Assembly (NCBI GenBank): GCA_002269645.1
Contig: NIVC01001540.1
Coordinates: 1 to 64,000 of the forward strand
DNA: 64,000 nt
Source of the DNA: Macrostomum lignano
Lineage: Eukaryota
Direction: 5' to 3'
Within the stretch, counting starts at the first letter, position 1. Each line of letters begins with the position of its first letter. The notes under the pieces are model-generated. The model was given only the letters and a program-made list of their open reading frames with translations. It ran no database searches and was not told the origin of the DNA. The position numbers and the translations under genes were made by a program. This document shows positions 2,335-48,400 of the stretch, piece after piece.

Positions 2335-2847
2335 TCAGGGGAAAGCCTCGTGGTCGAACACGTACTCTCCGATTCCGGTGCCCACCCTATTGAGTTGCGT
2401 GATGAAGGCGGAGATCTTGGCAATCGCGTCAACCTGCTCGCCGAGGAACTCTCCCTCTAGGAAGTCGGTGAGATGCGCGTCATCGTGTTTCGAGGTGACC
2501 TTGTGCAGGTCCAACAGGCTCTGGTTGACGTCCCTCTCCAGCTGCAGCGCGTCCTCCATCGCCTCCAGCATGGAGCCCCAAGCGTGCTTCTTCGGCCTGT
2601 TCACGTTGTCCAACACGACGGAGCCGCCTCGCTCGTTGATCAGCTTCATCAGCTTCTCGGCGTGCTCTCGCTCATCCGAGGACTTCTTGGCGAAGTAGGC
2701 TGAGATGCCGGGCAGGGCGACATCGTCGCGACTAAAGTAAAAGCTCATGCTCTGGTAGGTATACGACGCGAACAGCTCCATGTTCACTTGCTTGTTCAGC
2801 GCCGCCTCGCTCTCCTGGTGAAAGTTCTGTCTGATTCGGCTGCTCAT
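2335..2847 (-). CDS. FTH1-like: Ferritin, H-type (ferroxidase), single exon, 170 aa
   Basis: IRQNFH..NKQVNMELFASYTYQSM, DEREHAEKL, LERDVNQSLLDLH, EFLGEQV. Residues equivalent to E27, Y34, E62, H65, E107, Q141 are present; E61 is D. No signal peptide. Confidence 0.96.
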   Translation of the reverse strand: MSSRIRQNFHQESEAALNKQVNMELFASYTYQSMSFYFSRDDVALPGISAYFAKKSSDEREHAEKLMKLINERGGSVVLDNVNRPKKHAWGSMLEAMEDALQLERDVNQSLLDLHKVTSKHDDAHLTDFLEGEFLGEQVDAIAKISAFITQLNRVGTGIGEYVFDHEAFP

Positions 2848-3169
2848 GACTGCCGGCTCTGCCGGGCGAGACTGGGTTTTGATTGACTTTCTTGCGCTGT
2901 CTGCAAACAGCTGTCGAATTTATGCGCTCGGCTACGCAATGATCAGTCGTATTCGAGCCGAGCTGAGGCGCTTAGAATTATCATCACCAAGGCCAATGAA
3001 AAAAGTTAATCTCAGAAAGATGCTCAAACTGATCACAACTTGAGATGGGATGTGCTGAACAATAGAAGCCCTGGGTTATTATCTGTCATTACATTCATTA
3101 TCGATTAGTTCAACTAGTTCACTCATGCCTCACCGAAATAGTACATTTCCACAGCTTTCTTCGAAGATC

Positions 3170-3579
3170 TGATGTAGACTTGCGGTCGACATGGCCCACT
3201 GGGGACTCAGTCTAACCGCCGAGCCGGCCTAGTCCGCCCATGAGACCTCAAGCTAGCCGGCCAACTAGCCAGCCAAATCATCCGCGCCGAGTCCTACTGT
3301 CCGCAGCCGGTGCAGAATGTGCTGCTGCTGACGATGCGCAGGCACCCTGGCGCAAACTCGGCGTTTCGTCGAGCTGCCTGCTGGCTGACGCGGGCGCCCG
3401 GATTCGGTCGGTGACACGGCCTGTGTTTGCGCCCTAGCCAAGAGGCGCGCTGTGACTCTGACTATGTTTTATAAGTCTAACTGACAGCTTATTTTGTTGT
3501 TATTATTGTTGTTGTTATTTGAGTGTTTTAGAGAAGCGAAAATTCAAAACAACCAGTTCGGGTGAATTTTAAGGTAAGG
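3170..3579 (+). promoter_or_regulatory. GC/CpG-rich island, putative promoter and non-coding first exon of BTBD7, ending at donor AAG|GTAAGG (3574)
   Basis: Local CpG-rich stretch with no convincing ORF. Donor-like site at 3574; unpaired acceptor TTTGCCTTTAG at 6572 just upstream of the BTBD7 ATG. Inference. Confidence 0.35.
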
Positions 3580-5432
3580 GTTGACCACTATATTAAAATG
3601 ATAAAATATGCCAAAAATGTACGGAACTCGAAGGTATTTGACAGGATTTTTCCTGGGTGGGTGCACGTGACGGACCATAATATCTTCGATGTATAGGTCT
3701 TCAATGCCTATAGATAGGTGTGTATAGTTTCATCCGGTGTTAGGGTGACCACGGGGAGACCGTGACGCAACATATTACTTGCGTTGTACTCCCACCAGAG
3801 AACGCAGCATAAATTAGAGCTTTAAAATCTCTGGTGCCTTGTGATCTCCTATTACTCCTAAGGACACTATGCAGAGTCAGATAAATTTTTTTTCAAAAAA
3901 AATTCAGATGAGTTTTTAGTCACTGACCCTTCCCCTCTTAACTTTCAAAGCACAGATAGATCTGTTAGGGAATTGATCACCTTTGAGAGATCTTTACAGT
4001 GTGCTATGTACACAGCTAGTGCTCACTTGTCAAATGAGTATATATCATACAACAAACAATTCAAAACTATATAATTCGCCACTTGCTTTGCATCGTCGTT
4101 CAAAAGGCCTAATAATTATGGCAAATTTCTGTATACCTGCTCAATGGTGAGCATATCAGTTTGGCAACTTGAAGCGTCGAAGCGTTGGAGTAAAAAGCAC
4201 TAATACAGCTGTCCATAATGGCTGACAGTAATGTAATATTAAAAATAAAGCAATAAATTGTAGTAAGAGAAAATCTGGCAAAAACCAGAACATATTCTTT
4301 GATTTTAAACACCTTTTGTTATACTCTTCTTTTCCAAGAATAATTATTTATAAGAACCTATTTGACTGCACTAAATATTTAATATATAATGTTTCAGATC
4401 GATCGAGAAAATTTTTTGAAATTTTGTGAAAATAAGCCTTCACATTATTATCCACTTTATCAATTATCAATAACACTTATCAATAACTCTGATATTTTAG
4501 GCGTTATAACAAAATTATCATTACTTTTTGACTGACCCTCGTAGACATGGCTACCTTGTCTCTAAATGTGGCATTTTGTATTATAAGTAATTCGTTTCAA
4601 ATCTATTATTGTATTAGTATTTATGAATATGATTGATTAAATATGATAATTTATATAACTATAGCTTTTATATTGCTAATTACTGGTAGAAATAGAGTAG
4701 ATATAATAAAGATTCAATGTTATGGCCATCTTGGTGAGTGGCCATCTTGGTCTTATACCATTATATCAATAGTAGTTTAAAGCTCTTAGGCTCTATCCTG
4801 CCTTTGATTAACAAATATTAAAGACCATTATCCTAAGTCCTAGGTTTTTTGTGCCAAATGGTTGCCATGATACCTCAAAATTTTGTTTGGCACCTTGAAT
4901 TAGACCTATATTGCCAAAATGGCACCATAAATTTTTAGGCCTGCTGCTGCCAAGAAATTAATGTACTTTTATAATAGAGTAAAGATGACATCATTGAAGT
5001 GTAGTGTATATATTACTGCATAGGTAATATATTATCTCAATACTTATATAGGAAAAAGTTGAATGAGTAATAATAAGTAATATTAATGTCTAACAATATT
5101 TTACATTTTTTCTAGGAATTTTCAGGATTAATGATAAGGATTAATATAAAAAATTAGCATTGAATAATTAAGTTAAACATTTTGATGAGTACTAATTGGC
5201 ACCCTGATTTCTGATTTAGCACCCTGATTTTGGATTAAAGTGCCAAATACCACTCAATTTTTACAAAAAAACTAGTCTAAGTCTAAGATGATTAAAGATT
5301 TAGTAGAGAAAAGTTAAGCCTTGTAAACTCTTTATGAAGTAATATAGTATATAGTATAAAGATAGTGATATATAATATATCACTTCTTTTTGAGCATTTT
5401 GATTTTATAAGAGTTTAGAATTTTAATATCAT

Positions 5433-5868
5433 TAATTAATGGCAGTTGTTATTGTTACGGTGACTGTATAAACAACAAAACGGTTATTTTTATGGTTAAC
5501 GCATAAGATACTATGTGGGCCTATGGTCTTTACTTAATGTAACCATATAAATAGCAAAACTTATTTTTATGGTCACCATAGATGGGAAGCAAAATGGCTA
5601 TTTTTATGGTCATGTGGAAGAAATTTCTGTTAAATTACAAGGTAATAGTAACAATTACCTAAAGTAAGCTACCATGACAAGAACCACTAGAAGTTACCAT
5701 GGTATTTATTAATAAAACGTTTCTTTATTTTTTAAATTCAACTATCATAGTATTTGCATAGCAAGTTCATCACTTCATTTAGATGGTACTTGTTTTAAGT
5801 GTTAACCGTAAAAATAACTGTCTCGCTATTTATACGGTCACCATAACAATGACAACTGCCTAATTAAT
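5433..5868. mobile_element. MITE of about 420 bp (5441-5860) with 62-bp TIRs starting GGCAG and an 8-bp flanking direct repeat TAATTAAT
   Basis: 5441-5502 matches the reverse complement of 5799-5860 at 52/62 positions. TAATTAAT lies at 5433-5440 and 5861-5868, but an AT-rich match could be partly chance. Confidence 0.75.
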
Positions 5869-6587
5869 ATAACTTTTACTAATGTCATTGAAACTAAAAT
5901 CTAGTAATAAATATATTTAAAAAATACTTTTATCACCTATTGATTAATGATAAAATTATATAACTTATCTACAAGACCAGAAACCATAGTAAAAAGTTGT
6001 TAGTCTTTAGTTACTTGGGTCAAAATTTAAGGTAAAAAAAGTAAAAATTCCAAAAATCTATTAAACAAAATGTTAATATTTTTACTTTCATCTTTTATAT
6101 TACTAAGCCTATCTGACTTATAGAAGTTGAAAAAGACTATAAACTCCATGTTTATATATTCAAATTTGATAATTGATAGAAGTCTTAAGAATCCCAAGAC
6201 CTATAATTATTGAATTATTAAAATCTTGAACTTAAGTAGTATCCAAAGTGCCAATTTGGTATCTTAGATCCAATGTTAGAATGTCAAAATTAAGGTTAAT
6301 ATATCATGATGCATGTTATGATACAACAAACTTAGTCTAAGACTATGCAAAATGTCCAATTTTTCATTTTAAAGAGAGCACTTGGGCTGATGGAGAAAGG
6401 GCAGAGAGAGTAATGTAAATAGTATAAATAGTATTTACAGTGTCTTAATTCAACCAAAGATGGCTATTCTAAATTTTCAGATGTACTCTAGTTAACATTT
6501 GCACTTTTATTTAAGAGCTAGAAGAGCAATAAGTTCTCCTAGGCCAACTGACATTGTGCAGTTTGCCTTTAGACAGCTGCCCACCAA

Positions 6588-9500
6588 ATGGGGGCCGCTC
6601 CATCTGCTCTGACTGACTCGAGCTCCGCTTCGTTAGGACAGTTTGGTTGCCATGGCAACAGCTCAGAAAAGAGCCAGCCGTTGTCGACTGGCTCGGCGAA
6701 TTCCTTTGCGCCGTCCGGTCACAGCCGCCAATCGTCGTCTTCCTCGTCGGCGACGGCCCGTCTGCAGCAGACGCTGAAACGGCGAGTCGCCTGGCTTCGG
6801 CGACGATCTTCGCCGGATCCGGCCAAGCAATTTCGCGCCTTCATCGCCGACTGGAGCTCCGCCGATCTGCGCGTCTTGCTGGACGAATTTGAGGCGCTGC
6901 ACGCGCTTAAAGATGCTCATCTGGGCGCTGCGGCAGCGAGGCCGCAGTGCAGCAGCCTGTGCCAGGACCTCGGCTGCCTGCTGCGCACCGGGCTCGGCTC
7001 CGACACTCGCCTGATCCTGGGCGGTGTCGCCTTCCCTGTCCATCGGGCGGTGCTGGCCGCTAGGAGCAACTTCTTTGCTAGGCTGTTTGCCAACGGCGAG
7101 GACTATGACTCGGCCGCAACTGGGGGCGCTGGTGAGCTTTTTTGTGTTCCGATGATAGGGTGACCTTTATTGACCCCGAATACAGTGACCCTAATTGACC
7201 TGATTACAGGGTGACCCTAATTGACCCCGATTACAGGGTGACCCTAATTGACCCCGATTACAGGGTGACCCTAATTGACCCCGATTACAGGGTGACCCTA
7301 ATTGACCCCGATTACAGGGTGACCCTAATTGACCCCGATTACAGTGGCCCTAGGTGACCCGATTATAGGTTGACCTTAATTGACATCTATGACAGTGACT
7401 CCGATTACAGGGTGACCCTAATTGACCCCGATTACAGTGGCCCTAGGTGACCTGATTACAGGGTGACCTTAATTGACCCCGGTTACAGGGTGACCCTAAT
7501 TGACCCCGCTTGCAGGATGATCCTAATTGACCCCGATTACAAGGTGACCCTGATTTTAGCTGATAACAAAGTGAATTTGATTGACCCCGCGGGACTCCAG
7601 CTGGGTGACTTCGAGCTGTAACGAGGATTCAACTTGTACAATCGTCAAAACGCTTGTACAAGAATCTGATATAAAGGACATTAACTGTGCACTCAACGCC
7701 ACCACCCCATTCCATAGATTACCCACTGGACCTGTGCGTCCCTGGCGGCCTCGACCCCGAGCTGCTCCGGGCCCTCCTGGCCTACCTGTACTGCGGCGAG
7801 GTCAGCCTGGCCCGCCTCAGCGCACCGGCCACTGTGGCCGCCCTTTGCCACGAGCTCGGCGCCCCCGGCCGTCTGTCCGACGATTTAGCCCAACTGTTGG
7901 ACACCGGCCACCTGGCCGACTGCGTGCTAATATTTGAGGAGGCCGAACCGCGGGCGAGGCGAATCGAGCTGCCCTGCCACCGGGCCCTGCTGGCCTGTCG
8001 ATCGCCGTTCTTTGCCGGCGTTGTCGAGAAACGCCTGGCCGCCGCCAGGAGGCACCGACGCCGGCGCCTTGTCCGCTGCGCGGTTCACGGCGGCGGTGAC
8101 GGCGTCGGCGATGCTCAACTGGCGGAGCCGCCTTTGGCGCTGGTGCTCGACGAGGCTGTGCTGCCGCGCCGCCTGGCGCCGGCTATGCTGACCTGCCTGT
8201 ACACCGACCGCCTGCCCGACTGCCTGGCACTGCGGGTGAGTCTTTGTTTTTGGCTTTTGAAGTTGTCTTTGTTTTGGCTTTTTGGGTAGTCTTTGTTTTG
8301 TCTTTTGAAGTAGTCTTGGTTTCGGCTTTTGAAGTAGCCTTGGTTTCAGTTTTTGGAGTAGTCTTTGTTTTGTCTTTTAGAGTAGTCTTTGTTTTGACTT
8401 GTGAAGTAGCCTTGGTTTCAGTTTTTGGAGTAGTCTTTGTTTTGTCTGTTGGAGTAGTCTTTGTTTTGCATTCGGGTAGATTGGGTTGCTCGTTCCGCAG
8501 TTACTTAGCCGGTAGTATCAGTGACCCTCTGTCTGCTCATGCCCAGGACCTGATGGATCTGCACGAGATTGGCCGTTTCCTTGAGCTGCCCTGTCTCACC
8601 CGGGCTAGTGAAGACCTACTGGTGGAGTCCCTGTGCCCGGACACCCTGGTGCCTGTCCTGGACTGGTCCGGCGCCGGCACCGGTTCTGCCTGGGTCCACC
8701 GACAGGCGCGCCTGTTCCTGTGCGAGGAATTCGCCGCGCTAGCCGTCCAAGCGCCGCGTGTGCTGACTCAGCTGAGCCGCCGGGAGCTGCTGGCCGCTCT
8801 GCGGTCCGACTTTCTACAAGCGGCCGAGTCTGACGTGCTGAGCGCCCTCATCGCCTGGGGCGAGGCGCAGGTGGCCGCCAGGGCTGCGGAAATTGTCGCG
8901 GGTATGTCTACGGGATGGACCCTGGATGCTGTGGTTTGGTGACCCTAAATGACCCTGGGATGATGTGGTTCGGTGACCCTAATTGACCCTGGGATGCTGG
9001 GTTCGGTGACCCTAACTGACCCTGGATCTGGGGTTCGGTGACCCTAACTGACCCTGGGATGCTGTGGTTCGGTGACCCTAACTGACCCTGGGATGCTGTG
9101 GTTCGGTGACCCTAACTGACCCTGGGATGCTGGGGTTCGATGACCCTAATTTACCCAGGGATGCTGTGGTTCGGTGACCCTAATTAACTCGAAGATTCTC
9201 GGGTTTTGAAACCCTAATGGACCCTAGGATGTCGGAGTTCGGTGACCCTAACTGACCCTTGAATGCTTAGTTTCGGTGGCTCTAATTGACCCTATGGCTC
9301 TGCGAGGTTTCTGTGACCTTAAATAACCCCAGGATTTTATGGTTCGGTCACCCTAATGACCCGAAGATTCCCGGGTTTGATGACCCTAACAGACCTTAGG
9401 ATAGAATTTCAATGGTTTGTATGACCTTAACCATAGGCAGACGGATGGCCGTTTTCGTCCATTCTGTCTACCTCCAAGCTAGACGGCATAAAATCAATCT

Positions 9501-12500
9501 CTATGGGCCAAATTTGTTGGAATTTTTACCACAGCCGTTCCCGACGACTAGAGGCCGAAAACGGCCATATAAATATTATGTATAAGGACTACTGACTGCT
9601 ATATATAACCTCGGCAACACCGGTTTCCGCAACCAGAATATCTAACGCCTTGCGCAAGAAGTGGAGGAAGGACATGCTGCCGCCGTGGTAATTGTACAAG
9701 ATCCAGGCGTTGCGGACAAGCAGCACAATCAGATGGAAAGCCAGCTTGTTGAACCAGCGCAGCGACTTGCGGTTTGCTATGTAGGGACTCGTGTTAGAGT
9801 CCATGCGGTCCACTCCACCCATACAACGACTGTACGTGGTGATGCTGACCGGCTTCGCCACCACTTGCTGCTGACCACCAGGGCGAACGCGGGCTACATC
9901 GTGGCACTGCGCGTTACCTGCCGTGTCCAGCAAGTACACAGTCTTCTTGCCACTGTTCTTGGAGTCTACAAACTTGCACGCCAGCACGTTGCCACACCTT
10001 GCGAATGCTGATGATGTGGGGTGCAGGTTAGTGTCTCGCAGCAGTGGCGGCGGTCCACGATCTTTGCGCACGGTGCCAGTCAGCATGGTGTCGCGGGCCA
10101 GTAGCCACGAAGCCAGTCGGTACGATGTAAACCAGCTGTCGGTGAAGATGCGATGGCCAAGATGTAGAATGTCGCGGCATAGCTCGGCTACGACTCGCTC
10201 ACTAAAGGACAGGGCCTCACAGTCCAGTCCGGCACCAAACCTGGCATTCTCCTGCTGCGTTGTGTGAACGGCAAAGTTCCACAGGTATCCGGACTTGGCC
10301 TCACACAGGCAGTATAACTTGATACCATACTTGCTCTTCTTAGAAGGAATGTACTGCCTAAACTGTACCCGTCCTTTGTACATGACCAGAGTCTCGTCAA
10401 TTGATAGATTCTGATCGGGCATGTAGTTGTTCCGACAGGCGTGCTGCACAAGAGCAAGGAATGGAGAGATTTTGTCCACAGGGCTTTGAGGAGCGGGACC
10501 AGCGCTACTGTAAAAGCGAAGGCAGGAGAGAATCTGCTTGAAACGATCGCGCGAAAGTGAATGTGGCTGAGCCAGAAACGTGCAGTGGTACACAGGATCC
10601 TTTGCCCAGTATGAGCTGATCTCCGGCTTGTCATCAATGCCCATAAGCAACACGATGCCGATCAGCTTCTTCACCTCGTCAACACTGCAATCCTTCCATG
10701 TAGACACAACCTTTGGTAACTCATCAGCTGACCTTTCCTGAGCGAAACTCCGGGCCCGTTCGTTCGTCCACCTTGCAATGTTCTCGAACAGCTCGTCGGT
10801 TAGGTATTGATGCAAAAACTCTGACTCACTGCCATTCGCTGATTGTGGTGGTACCCAGTCCGGCCGAAAACCTGGGGTGCCAATGAACTCTGGGACAGCC
10901 GTGGGCCTGTCGTCCGTCCCTTCGATAGCTTGGTGCCACTCGTGTTCTTCCTCCATTTCGACGTCCTCATCTGAGCTGCTGGCGCTTTCAACGTTGTCAC
11001 CATCCTCACCTGGCTCTTCATCAAAATAAAACGATCCGTCCTCGTCGTCAGTGAGAAAATTGTCCGAGTCCGACGTGTAAATGAGATCCATAACTAGTCA
11101 AAACTAAACTAAAAGTAAAATGCTCATATAAAGCAGTCCGTATAAATGAATTAAATAAGCGAACAGACACTAAATTTAAGCGAGACTATAGGCGGGAACG
11201 GTGGTAGCAGCAACATTTATGATCGTAAATTTGAAAACTGTCTATGGCTGTTTTCGGCCTATCCGTCGGGAACGGTTATAAGCGCCTAAAACTGCAGTCA
11301 AATAGAGGTTAAATGTCCTAGGCTTCTTTGCTTTCGTGACCCTAATTGACCCTAAAATTATTTTACTTCGATGGACACGACTGACTTGATATTTTTGCGG
11401 ATTCGGTGACCTTAGCTAACTTATTTGGTAAGGCTGGAGCATCATGAGTTGACTTTAGATAAGAAGGTTTTCCAGTACGAGTTGTTTTTACTATACTCGC
11501 CCTAATAACCGACAGCTCAGCCGCAGCTATTGCGTGGCGCATCTGAAGGCTGCGTACGGCTGTTCAGTCCAAGGACTGGGGGGTCGCCACACATCCCAGC
11601 TAATGTTGGCACCCATTTTACAGTTGGGTGAATTGACTCAATGCAGAGTTAGGTGTCTTGCTCAAGGACACAAATTGTTCCGAGTGGGCCGAGAATCGAA
11701 CCCCAGACCTTCCAGTCGCGAGTCCGACGCTCTGACCACTAGGCTTAACATCTTGCCAGTTAATGATCTTCTCTTCGGCAACTGGCCGCACTTTTATACC
11801 CCAGTTTGTTTCTCTTGTACTTGGCAAAGAAGGCACTTGATGAGGTGTTCCGGGATGCTGGACTGGCCCTAACCACCTCCCTCATCAATCATGGCGTCTG
11901 CGCGTGTTATGGAGGGGAGCCAGAGTGAGGCGAGATGTATAAAGTAAACAAGGCGATGTCAAGATTGACTACTGTTCTGGAAAATTTTCTGCTCCTACCT
12001 GCTGCTGCCTTGCTTGCCAATCGCGTATGTAGTCTGCGGATTTTATTGCTTCAACAGAAATAGCGAATCAAATGCCGAACTGCTGCTTTCGGCCATAATT
12101 TATGGCGGGACTGCCAATGGATTTGGGAGATTCACGGCCTACTAACGAGTTTTGCTATCTGCTACGCGCAGTTTAAGGTCACGTGGTCTGTTAGTAAAGC
12201 AATAAGCTTTGCTTTCTTTCTGTCGAATGTCTGGTAAAAGTTGCGCCAGTCGCAGTCCTAAGTCTCGTTAATTAACCACTTAGTTTTTAGTTTTCTAACC
12301 GTCGACTAGATTTTAGCGCCACAGTCTAGATTTTAGCGCCATCGACTAGATTTTAGCACTACAGATTAGATTTTAGCGCCACAGACTAGCTTTTGGTGCC
12401 ACAGACTAGATTTTAGCGCCACAGACTAGATTTTAGCGCCATCGGCTAGATTTTAGCGCCACAGACTAGATTTTTGTTCCTAAACTAGATTTTAGCGCAA

Positions 12501-14751
12501 TCGACTAGATTTTAGCGCTACAGGCTAGATTATAGCGCCATTTTAGCGCCATAGACTAGATTTTAGCACTACAGATTAGATTTTAGCGCCACAGACTAGC
12601 TTTTGGTGCCACAGACTAGATTTTAGCGCCACAGACTAGATTTTAGCGCCATCGGCTAGATTTTAGCGCCACAGACTAGATTTTGGTGCCACAGACTAGA
12701 TTTTAGCGCCACAGACTAGATTTTTGTTCCTAAACTAGATTTTAGCGCAATCGACTAGATTTTAGCGCTACAGGCTAGATTATAGCGCCATTTTAGCGCC
12801 ATATACTAGATTTTAGCGCCATCGGCTAGATTTTAGCGCCACAGACACTAGATTTTAGCGCCACAGACTAGATTTTAGCGCCATAGACTAGATTTTAGCG
12901 CCACAGACTAGATTTTAGCGCCATCGACTAGATTTTTCCCCAAGAAACATGACCAAGATGATAAGCGGACAGCTGACCCCTTGAAATCCCCATGGATACC
13001 TAGAAGCAACTCAATTTTAGTGTACGTGGATAGATGGAATTCAAATTAAAGTAAAATTTTCGCCGTGGCAAAAAACACTACCCTAATTATGCAAGGAACA
13101 GAACAGCTAGAAGCGCTAAACTACCGCTTGCACTTTCGCTAACGGAACAGTTGATGTTTAAAAGTCGTTTTTTTCTTCAAAAACAGCCAAGCCTAGAAAG
13201 GGGATCCCTCTCCTGTTATTCCTTTTGAACGGCTTCTAAGCAGCTATTGAGCTGCACTAATGCTACGCCTACCTGCACCTGGCTTAGGGTTGAAGCCTGG
13301 CGCTCTTTTAATTGCTTGAGAAGCCGGCGCGGTTTTGACACAGAGGCGCACCGCCGCTTGTTGGCGCTGCAAAATTTATAATGAATGAGATGGAGAAGCG
13401 GAATTGAGGGAGGAAGGATGGAGAGAGGGGGGGACGCTGGGGTAAGTTAGTTAACTGCCCCGCTGTGTTTACAAGTACCTGCTTGGCCGGTTAAACTGTG
13501 GGGGCGTAGACTGCCCCCCTCCCTGCAGCCCTGAGGAGACAAGAGATGAATGGCTAAGCTTGGGGCTAATTAGCGATAGAACTGGTATCTGATTTTTTGT
13601 TGAGATAACAAGCTAAGCTGAGGCACTTTGATTGAGAAAATCACTTCTGGGGAAGTTCGATTTAGAGCCATCAATTTCCACTAAAAATTTTCCTTCATTC
13701 CAAACAAAAATCGCCCCAACCCCCTACCTCCTGCTTCCTGGAGGATTGCTCTACATCTCCAGCTCCATCAAGAATCGCCCTTTCAGCCTCCAGCTCCATC
13801 AAGAATCGCCCTTCAGCCTCCAGTTATATTAGGAATCGCCCTTCAGCCTCCAGCTCCATCAAGAACCCCCCTTAGCCTTCAGCTCCATTAAGAATCGACC
13901 CTCAGCCTCCAGCTTAATCTTTAATCGCCCCTCAGCCTCCAGCTTCATCAAGGATCGCTTCTCTTTCCTAGCAACCCCCATCCCCATCTCCATATCCAGA
14001 GTCGCAACAGACGGGCGCACCTGCAGGCTTCTCGCGCAAAACTGGCGGTGGGGGCGGTTTGTCCAGCGGCAGGCAGAAGCGAGCCGCCGGTTCAGCAGCG
14101 GCAGCGGCGGCCTCAGAGGAGCTGTCCTCTGTGCTGGGCGACCTGGTGTCACAGGGACTCCGATTGGAGCACTTGCTGTGCCCTGACAGCCTGCAGGAGG
14201 CCGTCAGGCGGAAGCTGCTGCCGAAGGACGCCGGGCTGTCCCGGCCGGCCGCCTGGCTGCACGCCGGCGGCGGCGGCGGATCCGACGGTGGCTATCGGCA
14301 TCCCAGGCTGTTCGCACCGCATCTTGAGGAGATTCGCTCCGTGCTCAGCGATCGAACCCGCGACCTCACTTTGGCTCAGTGCCCGCCGGAGCCGCCGCGC
14401 CGTCTACCGGCCAGTCCGCAGCCGGCCGCCGTTGCACCGCCGGACGCGGCTTCCGCCGCCGCCGCGGCTGCGGGTCTGTGGGGCGGCCACGGCGGCGGCG
14501 GCCCGGACCTCGTGGCCACCCTGCCGCCCGGCTGTTCGCCAATCGACCCGGCCACTGCGGCCAGCCTGCTCCGCCGTGTCCAGGAGCTGCTCTCCGGCAG
14601 CCTGTTCGTCCGGGCTGGCCTCCTGCCGGCCGCCGACCGGGCCGCCCTGCACAGGCAGGCGCAGCTGTGGGCCGTGCGCGAGTTCGGCCTGCCGGATTCC
14701 GCCGCCGCCCTCCTGCCGGGCCGCCTGCCCGACGTTGCCTTCCACGCTTGA
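6588..14751 (+). CDS. BTBD7: BTB/POZ domain-containing protein 7; exons 6588-7131, 7718-8235, 8547-8901, 14000-14751
   Basis: N-terminal MGAAPS (myristoylation-like), two BTB domains (FPVHRAVLAARS; LPCHRALLACRSPFF), BACK region (SAWVHRQARLFLCEEF, RSDFLQAAESDVL), and RLEHLL / YRHPRLFAPHLEE, colinear with vertebrate BTBD7 as I recall it. Junction phases 1, 0, 1 are compatible. Confidence 0.9.
7160..7555. repeat. 27-bp minisatellite (GTGACCCTAATTGACCCCGATTACAGG) in BTBD7 intron
   Basis: Direct tandem copies, period 27. Confidence 0.9.
8238..8470. repeat. 24-bp minisatellite (GTAGTCTTTGTTTTGTCTTTTGAA) starting at the splice donor
   Basis: Period 24 (8286, 8310, 8334); the unit resembles the donor sequence GTGAGTCTTTGTTTT. 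Confidence 0.85.
8915..9430. repeat. About 34-bp minisatellite (GTGACCCTAACTGACCCTGGGATGCTGTGGTTCG), interrupted by piggyBac and resuming at about 11313-11420
   Basis: Tandem copies share the core of the 27-bp array; the unit continues across the TTAA insertion site. Confidence 0.85.
9427..11312 (-). mobile_element. piggyBac-family DNA transposon inserted at a duplicated TTAA (9427-9430 / 11309-11312)
   Basis: TTAA on both sides; removing 9431-11312 restores a host repeat unit. Internal inverted repeats at 9535-9569 and 11243-11275 (CCGTTCCCGACG..AGGCCGAAAAC.GCCATA). Confidence 0.85.
9589..11091 (-). CDS. piggyBac transposase (PGBD4-like, DDE_Tnp_1_7), 500 aa, uninterrupted
   Basis: Acidic N-terminus; catalytic DDD motifs SIDETLV, IFTDSWFTS, MGGVDRMD; also YIPSKKSKYGIK and WFNKLAFHLI. 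Confidence 0.93.
   Translation of the reverse strand: MDLIYTSDSDNFLTDDEDGSFYFDEEPGEDGDNVESASSSDEDVEMEEEHEWHQAIEGTDDRPTAVPEFIGTPGFRPDWVPPQSANGSESEFLHQYLTDELFENIARWTNERARSFAQERSADELPKVVSTWKDCSVDEVKKLIGIVLLMGIDDKPEISSYWAKDPVYHCTFLAQPHSLSRDRFKQILSCLRFYSSAGPAPQSPVDKISPFLALVQHACRNNYMPDQNLSIDETLVMYKGRVQFRQYIPSKKSKYGIKLYCLCEAKSGYLWNFAVHTTQQENARFGAGLDCEALSFSERVVAELCRDILHLGHRIFTDSWFTSYRLASWLLARDTMLTGTVRKDRGPPPLLRDTNLHPTSSAFARCGNVLACKFVDSKNSGKKTVYLLDTAGNAQCHDVARVRPGGQQQVVAKPVSITTYSRCMGGVDRMDSNTSPYIANRKSLRWFNKLAFHLIVLLVRNAWILYNYHGGSMSFLHFLRKALDILVAETGVAEVIYSSQ
11490..11750 (-). mobile_element. tRNA-headed SINE with CORE-like body (copy A, CpG-intact)
   Basis: Minus strand: A box AGCCTAGTGG, B box GGTTCGATTC, then TGTGTCCTTGAGCAAGACACCTAAC..CTGTAAAATGGG. 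Aligns end to end with the copy at 28812-29100. Confidence 0.85.
12298..12935. repeat. 20-bp minisatellite (ACTAGATTTTAGCGCCACAG)
   Basis: Tandem copies with block duplications. Confidence 0.9.
13745..13955. repeat. About 30-bp minisatellite (AAGAATCGCCCTTCAGCCTCCAGCTCCATC) just upstream of the BTBD7 last-exon acceptor
   Basis: About 7 tandem copies. Confidence 0.8.
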
Positions 14752-26400: not shown

Positions 26401-27288
26401 CTCGGTGAGAGCCCACATCGCCTCTTCAATTTGGTCCGGATCTTGGGTGATGTCGTATACAATAACGTCGCACTCGACCAGATGTTCGTACATCTGCTCC
26501 CTGGTGTCGTACTAGAAAAGCAACATTTATGGTATTCGGTCAAATCTTCATCAGTATTGCAGACTAATCAGAATAAAACCCCAAATGAATAAGAAGCTTA
26601 CGCTGAGGATCTCCTTCACGAACTCTGGCTGCTTGGCCCCTGTCTTTTTCAAAGTGCCATGGATTTCATAGCAGCCTTCCTTTGGCTTCACTGGGAAGTC
26701 TCCGCTGAGGACAGATCCGGCCTCTTCCTCTTCTTCTTCGTTGTCTTCAAGAGTAGCACCAACGGCGCATTGTGAAAGGTACTGAAAGTCAAATGATTGT
26801 AATATAAATTTACTTTTTCAGTTCTGCAATGGAATCATTAAAAAGAGCGAAATTTCGAGTTAAACTTCTAGGTTAGTTTCTGGACCGAAATTATAAAAGT
26901 GAGCAAATAATAATTTCTGCTCTTTATTAGGTGGAATCAAGTAGTCAACTTAAATTGTGATCATAAATCATAATGAACTTTTTATAAAACAAGCTTAAAA
27001 TTTATTTAATCTAATATAGATTATCTAGGATGTTTTTTAAAGACTGCTAGACTGAAGAGTTATTTTAGTATTTTATTATTATATAATAAAATCACATTTT
27101 TAATAAATCAATATATCTATGACCTCTACCATCAAAACAACTGTAATTAGCATACAAATAACTTGAATAATAGTTTTCTGTCTCTTATCAAAACAGAAAT
27201 ATAAACTCACCTTTGAAATATGGTATCCCTGATATTCGTCAACATGATTGACGAAAATCCGAACTGGCTTGGTAGCTTCAGCAGCCAT
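20472..27288 (-). CDS. AK7: Adenylate kinase 7; 11 exons: 27288-27211, 26781-26602, 26511-26308, 26234-26124, 25905-25567, 24642-24364, 24242-24106, 24001-23901, 21888-21404, 20982-20824, 20510-20472 (about 703 aa)
   Basis: N-terminal NAD-binding-like region ([24 protein letters not shown]), P-loop [18 protein letters not shown], coiled coil, and a C-terminal Dpy-30 motif ([42 protein letters not shown]). All junctions are GT-AG and phase-compatible. Confidence 0.93.
21135..21410 (-). repeat. 33-bp repeat (TGGGTGAGTAGCGGGACTCGGTGCTCAATGGAG) x8 overlapping the AK7 exon 9 donor
   Basis: Translates as ([12 protein letters not shown])x8 in frame with the exon. Confidence 0.92.
21915..23220. repeat. 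33-bp palindromic minisatellite (GACTCCTCAGTCTATAGATCTGATATCTATAGC), about 40 copies, AK7 intron 8
   Basis: Each unit contains the hairpin CTATAGAT-CTGAT-ATCTATAG. Confidence 0.95.
24849..25030 (+). mobile_element. Degenerate RTE-like LINE fragment (post-RT C-terminal region), antisense in AK7 intron 5
   Basis: [32 protein letters not shown], with frameshifts; similar to 62058-62290. Confidence 0.7.
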
Positions 27289-27660: not shown

Positions 27661-30600
27661 ATGACTCCAGAATAGTAAGTAACGATTTGAATCATTCTTT
27701 GCTCATTTAGTAGCTTTCCTGTTATCTCACTGGGTTATACACTCATGCTTTTTTACTTTGTTTGTATCTATAGTAGTCTAGACCTAAAGTAGTATAGATA
27801 TGAAATATAAAATCAGATATATAATATAAGATATAGCTAAGATATAAATTGATAATGCTGCATATTAAATAAAATTAAACTTTGCTTACCTATCTTGCTT
27901 TGGTGTCATAAAGGATAATGAATGTATGTATTTTAACCATCTATGTTGACAGTATTGTATCTTTTGTGATATTCAAATTGCAATGGCTAGACCTAATGGT
28001 TAATGTGACAAAGGTTGTCACTGAGTTAACTTTTTTAGTTTTACAGGTTATTTTTTAATTTTATATTAAAATGTTCCTATTAGAAAAAAATATCTTTAAA
28101 CCATTTGAAATAATACATAGTTAAGTTAATAACTTGACAAATTATTATGTAGTAGGTAACTATTATAAAGTAAAGATTTCTTTTTAATTTAAAGATTAGC
28201 TAATTGTTTAAAATAATCAATATAAAAAAATTAGGCTATAAGCCTAATTAAATAAATAAAATAGACAAACAAAAAGATTTTAAGAATTTTAAACTTCTCT
28301 TTCTATTATAGGCTAAACTATTATATATATATATATATATATATGTGGTATAAACTAAAACTTATTTGTTAAATATTAATAGCATGTATTATATTAGAAA
28401 TATAATATGCTTAAGTATTTTTCTAAACTTGTATAAATTAAATTATTTTATTTATTATTTATTTCTATGTTTAAAACAGAGGTAGACATGGGCAAAGTGG
28501 GAGTATAAACAAAAAACATAGCAAGGTAGGTCCCAAAGCAATCAAATATATTTTTTTTGCCAATAAACTAAATTAGAATTAAAAGAAATTAAAATAAAAA
28601 AGATTTGGCATAGTAGCAGGCCAAAAAATATGATCAAAATTTCTTTGGCCGCAGCTAAGGGGGGCCATGGCTCCCTTGGCCCCTCCTTTGGATCTACCCC
28701 TGCAATGATACTCTCTATGATTAAGGGGAGCAACATATAAAAAACCCATGATGATATGCATGCACCTTGGGCATTAGAGGTAGTTAGTTAAGGCAAATAT
28801 ATATTACGGGGGTTATAGCCTAGTGGTTAGAGCATTGGACTTATGATTAAAAGGTTTTGGGTTTGATTCCCAATCTTATTTGAATCCTTAAACAAAACAT
28901 AATTCTGCATTGCTTTAGTTCACCCAGCTATAAAATGGATACTTGCATTAGTTAGGATAATTGAAAGTATACATGGCAACCCCTTAGTCATTGGACTAAA
29001 CAGCCATATGCAGCCTTCAGATGCACCATGCAGTAGACTATAGCTGAGCTGATCTTTGCACATTTGCCCATTGCACATTAGGGCAAATGGAATAAATAAA
29101 TACATAAATAATTAATTTTACATACATATTACTGTATAAAATTCATAGGGCAAAAAGATACATAATGATGCAACAAGAGAGTGGGTTAGAATGATGGCAA
29201 GTGAAACAGTGAGGTGGATTGTTCAAACATTTAAAGTGTTTAAAGCTGCCTAATTTACCTGCTTTATGTTATATAAGATTATTATTGCAATATGGCATAT
29301 TATGCAGATGTTATAGTATGATATATTATACCATTGTATCTAATTACTAATATGACATGCTAATCTAGACTTTTGAGAATTTTTGTTAGCATATCTTACA
29401 AAAAATCTAAATTCTTAAAGACAGTTTTGAAGCAATTATTAATAGTATATTACAGTATATTTGTACTTTTTGGATAAAAAATCAAACTGTAATGTAATAC
29501 TTACTTTCCTTCACTTCCTTGCCCAAACCTATCAGCGACTACCTGTTCAAGCTGTTGCTTATTGGCGACTCGGGTGTTGGTAAAAGCTGCCTTCTGCTGC
29601 GCTTTGCTGATGACACTTACACAGACAGCTACATCAGCACCATTGGCGTGGATTTCAAGATTCGAACTATTGAACTGGATGGCAAAACTATCAAGCTGCA
29701 GGTTATTTATGTTTTTTTTTCAATTTTTTAGGAACTTCAATTTTTTACTGCAAATCTTAGCTTTGTCACAATAGAATCTGGTCAGACTAGATTGCAGTCA
29801 CAATATAATCTTAATCAGGCTGGATTGCAGTCACAACAGAATCTGGTCAGACTGGATTGCAGTCACAATATAATCTTAATCAGGCTGGATTGCAGTCACA
29901 ACAGAATCTGGTCAGACTAGATTGCAGTCACAACAGAATCTGGTCAGACTGGATTGCAGTCACAACACAATATAATCTTAATCAGGCTGGATTGCAGTCA
30001 CAACAGAATCTGGTCAGACTGGATTGCAGTCACAATATAATCTTAATCAGGCTGGATTGCAGTCACAACAGAATCTGGTCAGACTAGATTGCAGTCACAA
30101 CAGAATCTGGTCAGACTAGATTGCAGTCACAACAGAATCTGGTCAGACTGGATTGCAGTCACAACAGAATCTGGTCAGACTGGATTGCAGTCACAACACA
30201 ATATAATCTTAATCAGGCTGGATTGCAGTCACAACAGAATCTGGTCAGACTGGATTGTAGTCACAATATAATCTTAATCAGGCTGGATTGCAGTCACAAC
30301 AGAATCTGGTCAGACTGGATTGCAGTCACAATATAATCTTAATCAGGCTGGATTGCAGTCACAACAGAATCTGGTCAGACTAGATTGCAGTCACAACAGA
30401 ATCTGGTCAGACTAGATTGCAGTCACAATATAATCTTAATCAGGCTGGATTGCAGTCACAACAGAATCTGGTCAGACTGGATTGCAGTCACAACAGAATC
30501 TGGTCATACAAATACAATCCTGCTTTCGCAACCATCATTCTAGATCTGGGACACGGCCGGCCAGGAGCGGTTCCGCACCATCACCTCATCCTACTATCGC

Positions 30601-35694: not shown

Positions 35695-36259
35695 TGTTTC
35701 TTATGCTACTTCCAGTGCAGCTTTCTAATCATAATCTGCTTCCAAGTCTAGTCGAAACCCTGCATCTAAACTCCCAAATCCCTATTTCTATATTCCCCAT
35801 TCCAAAAGCCACTAAGCACCCATCTTCAGCAATTTTTTTATGTTAGAATCAACATTTCAAATTATACAATAAATTTTTCTCTGCAGCAAGTGTTGCGCAT
35901 GATTCCTTGGTGCAGTTTTTACTTGAATTTGCTAATATTGGATTTGTTTGGACAATTTTAAACTCCTAGCAAGTTTATTCTTGAATTGAATCGATTGATT
36001 CAGTTTTTATGACTTATTTATTTATTTGGCGTATTAAGTGGAAGCGATATGGGGCGGGTAGGGTGCATCGATTTTTTTATGATGACGTGAGGGTTGAGAA
36101 ATTGCGTTAAACTTCAGTTTATAAGCCATTATTTACGCATTAATAACACACCTGTTACTAATTGCGTTGAAGGCGAAATGTTTTTACTTCTAACATTAAT
36201 CACTAACTAATAAAACCGTCTGTCTGCCATTGACATACTGCCACTCTATTTTTCACTCA

Positions 36260-45447: not shown

Positions 45448-48400
45448 ATGCCAACCACCCCCCCCCCTCAGCCAATTTTGTAACTGCTTTTGCTGTCGTT
45501 CTGTGCTTGCTGGGTTCGGCGACCGCCTACAGGCAGCTCATGCGGACTGGCAAGTGTGAGTATCCCGATTCTCCCTAAATCCCGATTCTCCCTAAATCCC
45601 GATTCTCCCTAAATCCTGATCCCTCCCTAAATCCCGATTGTTCCTAAATCCCGATTCTCCCTAAATCCCGATTCTCCCTAAATCCCGATTCTCCCTAAAT
45701 CCTGATCCCTCCCTAAATCCCGATTGTTCCTAAATCCCGATTCTCCCTAAATCCCGATTCTCCCTACATTCCGATTCTCCCTAAATCCTGATCCCTCCCT
45801 AAATCCCGATTGTTCCTAAATCCCGATTCTCTCTAAATCCCGATTCTCCCTACATCCCGATTCTCCCTAAATCCCGATTCTCTCTAAATCCCGATTCTCC
45901 CTAAATCCCGATTCTCCCTAAATCCTGATCCCTCCCTAAATCCCGATTCTCCCTAAATTCCGATTCTCTCTAAATCCCGATTCTCCCTACATCCCGATTC
46001 TCCCTAAATCCCGATTCTCTCTAAATCCCGATTCTCTCTAAATCCCGATTCTCTCTAAATCCCGATTCTCCCTAAATCCCGATTCTCCCTAAATCCCGAT
46101 TCTCCCTAAATCCCGATTCTCCCTACATCCCGATTCTCTCTAAATCCCGATTCTCTCTAAATCCCGATTCTCTCTAAATCCCGATTCTCCCTAAATCCCG
46201 ATTCTCCCTACATCCCGATTCTCCCTAAATCCCGATTCTCTCTAAATCCCGATTCTCTCTAAATCCCGATTCTCCCTAAATCCCGATTCTCTCTAAATCC
46301 CGATTCTCTCTAAATCCCGATTCTCTCTAAATCCCGATTCTCCCTAAATCCCGATTCTCCCTAAATCCCGATTCTCTCTAAATCCCGATTCTCCCTAAAT
46401 CCCGATTCTCTCTAAATCCCGATTCTCCCTACATCCCGATTCTCTCTAAATCCCGATTCTCCCTACATCCCGATTCTCCCTAAATCCCGATTCTCTCTAA
46501 ATCCCGATTCTCCCTAAATCCCGATTCTCCCTAAATCCCGATTCTCCCTAAATCCCGATTCTCCCTAAATCCCGATTCTCCCTAAATCCCGATTCTCCCT
46601 AAATCCCGATTCTCCCTAAATCCTGATCCCTCCCTAAATCCCGATTCTCCCTAAATCCCGATTCTCTCTAAATCCCGATTCTCCCTACATCCCGATTCTC
46701 CCTAAATCCCGATTCTCCCTAAATCCCGATTCTCTCTAAATCCCGATTCTCCCTAAATCCCGATTCTCCCTAAATCCCGATTCTCCCTAAATCCCGATTC
46801 TCCCTAAATCCTGATCCCTCCCTAAATCCCGATTGTTCCTAAATCCCGATTCTCCCTAAATCCCGATTCTCTCTAAATCCCGATTCTCCATAAATCCCGA
46901 TTCTCTCTAAATCCCGATTCTCCCTAAATCCCGATTCTCCATAAATCCCGATTCTCTCTAAATCCCGATTCTCCCTAAATCCCGATTCTCCCTAAATCCC
47001 GATTCTCCCTACATCCCGATTCTCTCTAAATCCCGATTCTCCCTAAATCCCGATTCTCTCTAAATCCCGATTCTCCCTAAATCCCGATTCTCTCTAAATC
47101 CCGATTCTCCCTAAATCCCGATTCTCCCTAAATCCCGATTCTCTCTAAATCCCGATTCTCCCTAAATCCCGATTCTCTCTAAATCCCGATTCTCCCTACA
47201 TCCCGATTCTCTCTAAATCCCGATTCTCCCTACATCCCGATTCTCCCTAAATCCCGATTCTCTCTAAATCCCGATTCTCCCTAAATCCCGATTCTCCCTA
47301 AATCCTGATCCCTCCCTAAATCCCGATTCTCCCTAAATCCCGATTCTCCCTACATCCCGATTCTCCCTAAATCCCGATTCTCTCTAAATCCCGATTCTCT
47401 CTAAATCCCGATTCTCTCTAAATCCCGATTCTCCCTAAATCCCGATTCTCCCTAAATCCCGATTCTCCCTAAATCCCGATTCTCCCTAAATCCTGATCCT
47501 CCCTAAATCCCGATTGTTCCTAAATCCCGATTCTCCCTAAATCCCGATTCTCTCTAAATCCCGATTCTCCATAAATCCCGATTCTCTCTAAATCCCGATT
47601 CTCCCTAAATCCCGATTCTCCATAAATCCCGATTCTCTCTAAATCCCGATTCTCCCTAAATCCCGATTCTCCCTAAATCCCGATTCTCCCTACATCCCGA
47701 TTCTCTCTAAATCCCGATTCTCCCTAAATCCCGATTCTCTCTAAATCCCGATTCTCCCTAAATCCCGATTCTCACAAAATCCTGATCCCTCCCTAAATCC
47801 CGATTCTCCCTAAATCCCGATCCTCCCTACATCCCGGATTCTCCCTAAATCCCAATTCTCCCTAAATCCCGATTCTCCCTAAATCCCGATTCTCTCTAAA
47901 TCCCGATTCTCCCTAAATCCCGATTCTCACAAAATCCTGATCCCTCCCTAAATCCCGATTCTCCCTAAATCCCGATTCTCCCTAAATCCCGATTCTCTCT
48001 AAATCCCGATTCTCCCTAAATCCCGATTCTCCCTAAATCCCGATTCTCCCTAAATCCCGATTCTCCCTAAATCCTGATCCCTCCCTAAATCCCGATTGTT
48101 CCTAAATCCCGTATGTCCCTAAATCCCGATTCTCTCTAAATCCCGATTCTCCCTAAATCCCAATTCTTCCTAAATCCAAATTCTTCCTAAATCCCGATTC
48201 TCCCTAAATCCCATTCTTCCTAAATCCAAATTCTTCCTAAATCCCGATTCTCCCTAAATCCCGATTCTCCCTAAATCCCGATTCTCCCTAAATCCTGATC
48301 CCTCCCTAAATCCCGATTGTTCCTAAATCCCGATTCTCCCTAAATCCCGATTCTCTCTAAATCCCGATTCTCTCTAAATCCCGATTGTTCCTAAATCCCG

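Follow-up and report, generated by a model that had tools for sequence, protein, structure and literature searches.

A CpG-free block 5' of a BTBD7-like gene in Macrostomum lignano as a probable scar of local cytosine decay

The first 64,000 nucleotides of contig NIVC01001540.1 (assembly GCA_002269645.1, forward strand) of the flatworm Macrostomum lignano, hereafter the window, encode by Pfam a ZIP transporter (1046-1915), a ferritin and a BTB/BACK protein, the last of which is the product of a BTBD7-like gene on the plus strand; a Rab1 gene lies further along. The BTBD7-like coding sequence is preceded immediately by an AT-rich non-coding domain (4595-6595) that has no CpG dinucleotide outside one embedded transposable element. 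The domain is probably a further case of something already known in kind, a local cytosine-decay scar in a 5' intron or outron. The comparison DNA totals 84 kb and consists of the window plus a second M. lignano locus, L001, which carries a ferritin paralogue and is not syntenic with the window. The domain is built as follows, with GC the fraction of G+C and o/e the ratio of observed to expected counts:

4595-5440, no strand: left CpG-void flank, unique AT-rich non-coding DNA; GC 0.265; 0 CpG against 14.6 expected; GpC o/e 1.57
5433-5440, no strand: left copy of an 8-bp target-site duplication, TAATTAAT, read from the sequence
5441-5860, no strand: 420-bp non-autonomous hAT-like miniature inverted-repeat transposable element (MITE), with arms at 5441-5506 and 5795-5860, holding the only 7 CpGs of the domain
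5861-5868, no strand: right copy of the 8-bp target-site duplication, TAATTAAT, read from the sequence
5861-6572, no strand: right CpG-void flank, unique AT-rich non-coding DNA, with its 3' end at an AG 15 nt before the BTBD7-like start codon; GC 0.265; 0 CpG against 12.5 expected; GpC o/e 1.12

A first, sequence-only reading of this DNA had described the domain as CpG-free outside the MITE, and a count by position shows that description to be exact: there is no CpG in 4595-5457 or in 5837-6595, and each of the 7 CpGs of the domain lies within the MITE. CpG starts fall at 4593, then at 5458, 5481, 5500, 5718, 5807, 5824 and 5835, and then at 6596. Across the two flanks combined (about 1,557-1,558 bp, GC 0.265) none is found where 27.1 are expected, while GpC occurs 37 times, an o/e of 1.36. 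Because GpC is normal and CpG stands at 0 of 27, it is CpG in particular that has been lost, and base composition does not account for it. Not one of 20,000 shuffles reached zero CpG, for either flank or for both combined. A zero count in the flanks has a Poisson probability of 1.7e-12 given their composition and of 3e-9 if the o/e of the neighbouring DNA, 0.72, is assumed; even a vertebrate-like o/e, set at 0.2, gives only 4e-3. The CpG void is real, domain-specific and highly non-random, far beyond chance. The flanks are also TA-rich, as had been noted (TpA o/e 1.02, against 0.80 across the whole window), and their composition obeys strand parity. The abrupt 3' end that had been claimed for the domain holds for CpG, whose edge is sharp (the first CpG comes 8 nt into the coding sequence), but not for GC, which climbs gradually over about 300 bp.

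Could AT-richness by itself empty a sequence of CpG? With this domain and the Rab1 domain excluded, the non-tandem DNA of the window, taken in 100-bp bins, has a CpG o/e of 0.79-1.02 in all GC classes, including 0.90 at GC 0.2-0.3 and 0.84 at GC 0.3-0.4. The adjoining 4199-4594 (GC 0.27) has 5 CpGs against 7.2 expected, and the probability that all 5 would land there under a uniform rate is 4e-4. A separate AT-rich stretch at 35849-36200 (GC 0.33) has a CpG o/e of 1.21. Since DNA of the same GC elsewhere keeps its CpGs, AT-richness is not the cause of the void, which is a property of this particular block. Only two non-tandem places in the window are void, the BTBD7 domain and 26.9-29.5 kb, and most of the remaining long CpG-free gaps are tandem arrays whose repeat unit has no CpG.

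The arrays have peculiarities of their own. About 31 minisatellite and microsatellite arrays make up 41% of the 64 kb, and they produce a strong strand bias (C 17,318 against G 12,643) and many spurious long open reading frames (ORFs). Their CpG sites are no more variable than their other G/C sites (0.026 against 0.038), so CpG hypermutability is not genome-wide. A surplus of CpG-less array units was considered and discarded, as the 20 observed are no meaningful excess over the 15.3 expected. The 6.6-kb array at 45562-52194, with about 390 copies of the 17-mer ATCCCGATTCTCCCTAA, has a CpG o/e of about 2.3, and its CpG position is very stable, with transition variants at 1.3%; in this it is the reverse of the void domains. 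The 762-bp CpG-free gap of L001 was likewise set aside, being a (CTAT)n microsatellite.

The MITE offers a record of what has happened within the BTBD7 domain. An 8-bp target-site duplication is a hallmark of hAT-type elements, and here it accompanies terminal inverted repeats, a small size (420 bp) and the lack of coding capacity (no ORF), all as in hAT-superfamily MITEs. Unlike in those MITEs, the arms are unusually long (66 nt, 83% complementary) and composed of sub-repeats. A piggyBac-type TTAA duplication was rejected, as only the 8-bp TAATTAAT reading leaves the arms in register. No second copy or autonomous partner was found in the 84 kb of window and L001, and the MITE terminus gave 0 matches in metagenome contigs. 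The sequence-only reading took the MITE for a later insertion that still has its CpGs, which stands; the void is unchanged on either side of it. Over the first 62 columns of the arms there are 10 mismatches, every one a transition and none a transversion (P about 1e-3 against a 1:1 baseline); 6 of them oppose a CpG to TpG or CpA. If the arms are assumed to have been identical at insertion, they would have held about 12 ancestral CpGs, of which 6 remain. These 6 are all but one of the CpGs of the MITE, whose interior has 1 against 6.4 expected.

The other void place in the window supplies a polarised substitution history, in the form of a transfer RNA (tRNA)-derived short interspersed nuclear element (SINE) that can be compared with copies elsewhere:

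27675-29535, plus strand: sister domain, intron 1 of Rab1 (tblastn of Rab1), bounded exactly by the exon edges; GC 0.28; 3 CpG against 36 expected
28812-29051, plus strand: eroded tRNA-derived SINE copy; Rfam tRNA match at 28815-28874 (34.6 bits), its T-loop reading GGTTTGA in place of the model's GGTTCGA
11507-11749, minus strand: intact SINE copy used as reference, in CpG-normal DNA; the aligned stretch 11440-11790 has GC 0.51 and 18 CpG
L001 9170-9500: second reference SINE copy, in CpG-normal DNA

That this sister domain is the first intron of Rab1, also a claim of the first reading, is borne out by homology, exon 1 (MTPEY) joining DYLFK. Exon 1 is tiny, with its ATG at 27661 (ATG ACT CCA GAA TA, encoding MTPEY), and within the gene segment 27661-29536 the void begins at intron position +9 and runs up to the first base of exon 2. 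Of the three CpGs of the intron, at 27683, 28650 and 28807, the last two are interior. The CpG at 28650 is carried by a short GC-rich stretch at 28640-28810 (GGCCGCAGCTAAGGGGGGCCATGGCTCCCTTGGCCCC...), which looks like a separate, younger insert beside the SINE, and the one at 28807 sits at the SINE junction. The dinucleotide signature of the sister domain matches that of the BTBD7 flanks. Rab1 introns 2 and 3 are CpG-poor too (o/e 0.03 and 0.16), filled as they are with arrays of CpG-less or CpG-poor units, and the first intron (26784-27212) of a divergent minus-strand gene nearby is CpG-poor, with an o/e of 0.47.

Scoring of the SINE was restricted to sites where both reference copies agree. 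In the eroded copy all 12 scorable shared CpGs are gone, by transitions. G/C-to-A/T transitions affect 35 of its 113 G/C sites, against 4 of 79 and 1 of 78 in the reference copies (P = 7e-6 and 2e-8), and transversions are equal (13/204 against 20/342, P = 0.85). Equal transversions beside some 9-35 times as many G/C-to-A/T transitions point to a difference in rate and not in age. The changes are balanced between C>T (16) and G>A (19), which indicates that both strands were affected. Per-site rates run from 0.54 at CpG through 0.37 at CpA to 0.17 at CpT and 0.11 at CpC (CpA against CpT plus CpC, P = 0.02), and the GC of the copy has dropped from about 50% to 36%. The eroded copy reaches the Rfam tRNA gathering score, and the GC-richer copy at 11507-11749 gives no match at E<=1. 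Matches of the SINE core in metagenome contigs (5 in all) were dismissed as chance 19-21-mers in GC-rich contigs.

The flanks themselves hold little structure. No ORF longer than 56 aa lies in them (none longer than 45 aa in the left flank), the longest within 3575-6580 being a 67-aa frame at 4109-4312, upstream of the void. Rfam has no match within 2500-7000. The sole tandem trace is 38 bp (Tandem Repeats Finder, TRF, period 20 at 5199-5236). A repeat and foldback family of the form TTTGGCACC...GTGCCAAA occurs in the left flank, in two clusters:

4849-4935, no strand: decayed short repeat/foldback cluster, copy A (GTGCCAAAT ... TTTGGCACC ... TGCCAAAATGGCACC); direct families D2 and D3, inverted pairs I6 and I12
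5186-5262, no strand: decayed short repeat/foldback cluster, copy B (TTGGCACCCTGATTT x2 ... GTGCCAAAT); families D1-D5; TRF 5199-5236

The inverted pair I2 of copy B has 17-nt arms that are 82% complementary. A kinship between the left-flank motif and the 20-bp array at 12304-12936 was considered and abandoned, the transition-tolerant scan giving it no support. The presence of this decayed family makes "element remnants" a fair description of the left flank. The further claim that these remnants are transition-eroded does not follow from the family, whose mismatches have no transition bias; erosion is supported indirectly, through the MITE arms and the sister-domain SINE.

The position of the domain in its gene depends on the following elements:

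3150-3573, no strand: GC-rich, CpG-normal block between ferritin (minus) and BTBD7 (plus), with a TATA-like TTTTATAAG near 3466
3574-4594, plus strand: upstream portion of a putative 5' intron or outron, ordinary in CpG (o/e 0.71); candidate donor AAG/GTAAGG, with its GT at 3574
6570-6572, plus strand: candidate 3' splice acceptor (cis or spliced-leader trans), TTTAG/ACAGCTG, whose TAG doubles as an in-frame stop upstream of the ATG
6588-7133, plus strand: first coding exon of the BTBD7-like gene (MGAAPS...), called from the ORF; GC 0.645; CpG o/e 1.08; BTB and BACK domains

The gene had been correctly named: Pfam and a near-identical M. lignano model identify a BTBD7-like BTB/BACK protein starting MGAAPS at 6588. 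The exon at 6588 and the next two share 96% identity with UniRef A0A1I8HLT9 of M. lignano, a single residue being different in exon 1, and an M. lignano model that is frameshifted aligns with the window in another reading frame. Public M. lignano UniRef models are defective here. P0001 changes reading frame inside exon 1, and P0123 uses a GT internal to exon 1, losing about 38 residues of the first BTB domain. A 5'-untranslated-region intron from 3574 to 6572, as first proposed, is plausible but unproven. The donor fits the M. lignano motif GT[G/A]AG (PMC8629364) and the acceptor TTTAG/ is usable, but the void starts about 1 kb inside this intron and not at the donor. The outron, offered as an option by the same reading, would place spliced-leader (SL) trans-splicing at 6573. 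The M. lignano SL ends in ATG, which would be in frame if joined there, giving MTAAHQMGAAPS, with CTTTAG as acceptor (TAG, not CAG). P0123 starts TAAHQM exactly at 6573, and the predicted 3573/6573 cis-spliced mRNA would be open further upstream (RSENSKQPVRVNFKTAAHQM), to RSENSKQPVRVNFK.... The start of P0123, the open upstream reading and the in-frame SL ATG together give a weak hint in favour of trans-splicing over a cis intron. An SL joined at 6573 would put MTAAHQ before MGAAPS, removing the N-terminal glycine context of the annotated start. Either way, the DNA of the domain is presumably intronic or part of an outron.

Upstream, GC is 0.64 at 3151-3450 and CpG o/e is 1.00 over 2848-3573, and the block at 3150-3573 may be a shared divergent promoter together with a non-coding exon 1. 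The ferritin gene on its other side (2335-2847, minus strand) is 83% identical to a paralogue in M. lignano and reaches no more than about 66% identity with full-length ferritins from other taxa. It appears intronless, and Rfam finds no iron-responsive element upstream of it at E<=1. The BTBD7 and ferritin exons are undepleted in CpG (o/e 1.0-1.08), and those of Rab1 (0.63-1.02) show mild depletion at most. Some 650 bp beyond the last identified BTBD7-like exon, which ends near 8940, lies an intact 500-aa ORF of a piggyBac-type transposase (9589-11091, minus strand; Pfam DDE_Tnp_1_7, E = 1.7e-68). Exact-protein look-ups for other assemblies or homeologues, made with the ferritin, the ZIP ORF, the piggyBac-like ORF, the BTBD7 exon-1 ORF, P0001 and P0123, returned no match.

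On balance, we lean towards reading the void as the footprint of regional, strand-symmetric C-to-T decay, likeliest of 5-methylcytosine (5mC) laid down by DNA methyltransferases, and not as a functional element. Old, repeat-derived non-coding DNA would have lain just before the first BTBD7-like coding exon, in a 5' intron or outron. A decay confined to the region and symmetric between the strands, with a preference of CpG over CpA over CpT and CpC, would then have stripped it of every CpG and of much of its other G+C, leaving 26% GC. The hAT-like MITE would have come later; CpGs persist in its arms, with about half already lost. The likeliest chemistry would be deamination of 5mC, with the methyl marks coming from DNMT1 and DNMT3, and methylation is the presumed cause of the CpG loss. 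Both enzymes are kept in M. lignano, whose 5mC level is low and whose methylation pattern is unmapped (PMC9246332, PMC11292947, PMC10658182). By analogy, the process that acted on the sister domain probably also made both BTBD7 flanks. The interpretation that the sequence-only reading gave of the domain is partly supported.

Several observations weigh against this account. TpG and CpA, the products expected of CpG decay, show no surplus in the flanks, where their o/e of 1.04 equals the whole-window value; such a flat level is compatible with very old decay and lends no positive support. Mismatches within the left-flank repeat are about 4 transitions to 5 transversions (hand count on a 33-nt pair), with no transition bias. 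Relatives of the flanks were found neither by blastn at word size 7 against the window and L001 nor by a Smith-Waterman scan that counts C-to-T and G-to-A as matches, in which nothing rose above shuffled controls for the flanks (the SINE, run as a positive control, reached 200, where the null is about 35). With no flank homologue, substitutions in the flanks are not polarised, and the case for them is one of analogy with the sister domain and the embedded MITE. The differences between the MITE arms could predate insertion, the SINE comparison draws on two reference copies only, and the raised non-CpG C-to-T rate in the eroded SINE is not predicted by simple CpG methylation.

Could the flanks instead have been AT-rich from the start? 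They might derive from mobile elements or satellites that were AT-rich and CpG-free by origin, with no erosion in place. The missing TpG/CpA excess agrees with this, the repeat and foldback family of the left flank suggests element debris, and the transition-tolerant search gave no intact, GC-richer relative. However, no terminal repeats, duplication or ORFs span the flanks, the void continues unchanged past both sides of the MITE, and a SINE in the sister domain, whose dinucleotide signature is the same, was demonstrably eroded where it sits. Zero CpG over 1.56 kb would moreover need strong intrinsic avoidance, and a native composition of this kind is unlikely. Age alone, under which the flanks would simply be the oldest neutral DNA of the window, drifted to the AT-rich equilibrium of the genome, and all other non-coding DNA would be young, is very unlikely. 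The tandem arrays (41% of the window) do look young, their variants show a general G/C-to-A/T transition bias (0.038 against 0.013), and the later-inserted MITE is less decayed than its flanks. Yet an equilibrium without CpG-specific mutation predicts a CpG o/e near 1, not 0 beside a GpC of 1.36. The eroded SINE carries the transversion load of the intact copies with about 9-35 times their G/C-to-A/T transitions, and CpG sites in the arrays are not hypervariable.

A regional deamination that is independent of methylation could also have made first introns AT-rich, whether by a process like repeat-induced point mutation (RIP), by a cytidine deaminase or through single-strand exposure in promoter-proximal R-loops. 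Non-CpG C-to-T changes are up 6- to 20-fold in the eroded SINE, with CpA above CpT and CpC (P = 0.02), TpA/ApT is 1.04 in the flanks against 0.80 in the window, and a divergent promoter is found just upstream of the Rab1 domain, a candidate one upstream of the BTBD7 domain. Against single-strand, R-loop and complementary-DNA-editing models stand the 16 C>T and 19 G>A changes of the SINE and the strand parity of the flanks, and transcription-coupled single-strand deamination was rejected on the strength of these strand-symmetric changes. The RIP index (CpA+TpG)/(ApC+GpT) is unchanged (1.22 in the flanks, 1.24 in the window), and the support comes from a single SINE copy. A RIP-like system is not known in animals, and this explanation is likewise very unlikely. 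Foreign or organellar DNA, be it a nuclear copy of mitochondrial DNA (NUMT), food-algal DNA or a misassembly, can nearly be dismissed. The AT-rich, CpG-poor composition does resemble that of organellar DNA. But ORFs read with the flatworm mitochondrial code (translation table 14) hit no mitochondrial Pfam family, there is no Rfam match at 2500-7000, and the block adjoins a coding exon with a usable AG 15 nt before its start and contains a MITE with an intact duplication. A NUMT or organellar origin was rejected on the first two of these grounds.

The proposed regional C-to-T decay of methylated cytosine has known counterparts. Depletion by deamination of germline 5mC, as in the bulk of vertebrate genomes or the methylated compartments of mosaic invertebrate genomes, likewise removes CpG specifically and leaves GpC intact, and the flanks combine a CpG o/e far below 1 with neither composition nor GpC to explain it. 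CpG has given way to TpG or CpA wherever ancestry is readable, at 6 mismatches in the MITE arms and at 12 of 12 sites in the sister-domain SINE, the flanks having no homologue found. DNMT1 and DNMT3 are retained, and CpG-normal DNA lies alongside. Unlike in those systems, the depletion here is total (0 of 27 expected) and takes the form of kilobase-scale non-coding blocks in a genome that is otherwise CpG-normal. Non-CpG cytosines decayed fast in the one polarised element, and no surplus of TpG or CpA remains (o/e 1.04 in the flanks). Classic gene-body methylation differs as well, in that the BTBD7 and ferritin coding exons are undepleted here and those of Rab1 at most mildly so.

The likeness to fungal RIP and its AT-rich isochores lies in discrete AT-rich blocks beside GC-rich genes, in both-strand C-to-T change with a CpA preference in a repeated element, and in a TpA/ApT raised to about 1.0. 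C-to-T change on both strands far above a transversion-calibrated background is seen in the sister-domain SINE only; in the flanks TpA/ApT is high (1.04), but (CpA+TpG)/(ApC+GpT) is not low. In contrast to RIP, the host is an animal, CpG and not CpA is hit hardest, and the flanks are not detectably repeated. The domain also resembles the long AT-rich first introns and outrons of SL trans-spliced Macrostomum genes, lying directly 5' of the first coding exon with an AG 15 nt before the ATG; its Rab1 sister is a first intron by homology. First-intron status alone, however, does not predict total CpG loss, and some 1 kb of the putative intron precedes the void. A bolder proposal is that Macrostomum has a regionally targeted both-strand C-to-T hypermutation, favouring CpG over CpA over CpT and CpC, that renders promoter-proximal first introns and their repeats AT-rich and CpG-free and spares exons, promoters and most other non-coding DNA. 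It would work through dense DNMT3-type methylation of cytosines in every context or through an animal counterpart of RIP, and we regard it as quite unlikely.

M. lignano is a flatworm model that keeps DNMT1 and DNMT3, unlike planarians and parasitic flatworms. CpG-void AT-rich blocks in its CpG-normal genome amount to a prediction, from sequence only, of where cytosine is modified in the germline, and the blocks here would be 5'-proximal introns, as opposed to gene bodies at large. One polarised element has an unexpectedly high load of non-CpG C-to-T changes, a sign that the process may be broader than classical CpG methylation, and there is a modest chance that the wider meaning is all-context regional hypermutation in an animal. 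If the pattern did not hold genome-wide, this locus would be just an old, decayed stretch of intron. If it did, such blocks would chart methylation targets at little cost and would make regional hypermutation open to test in an animal.

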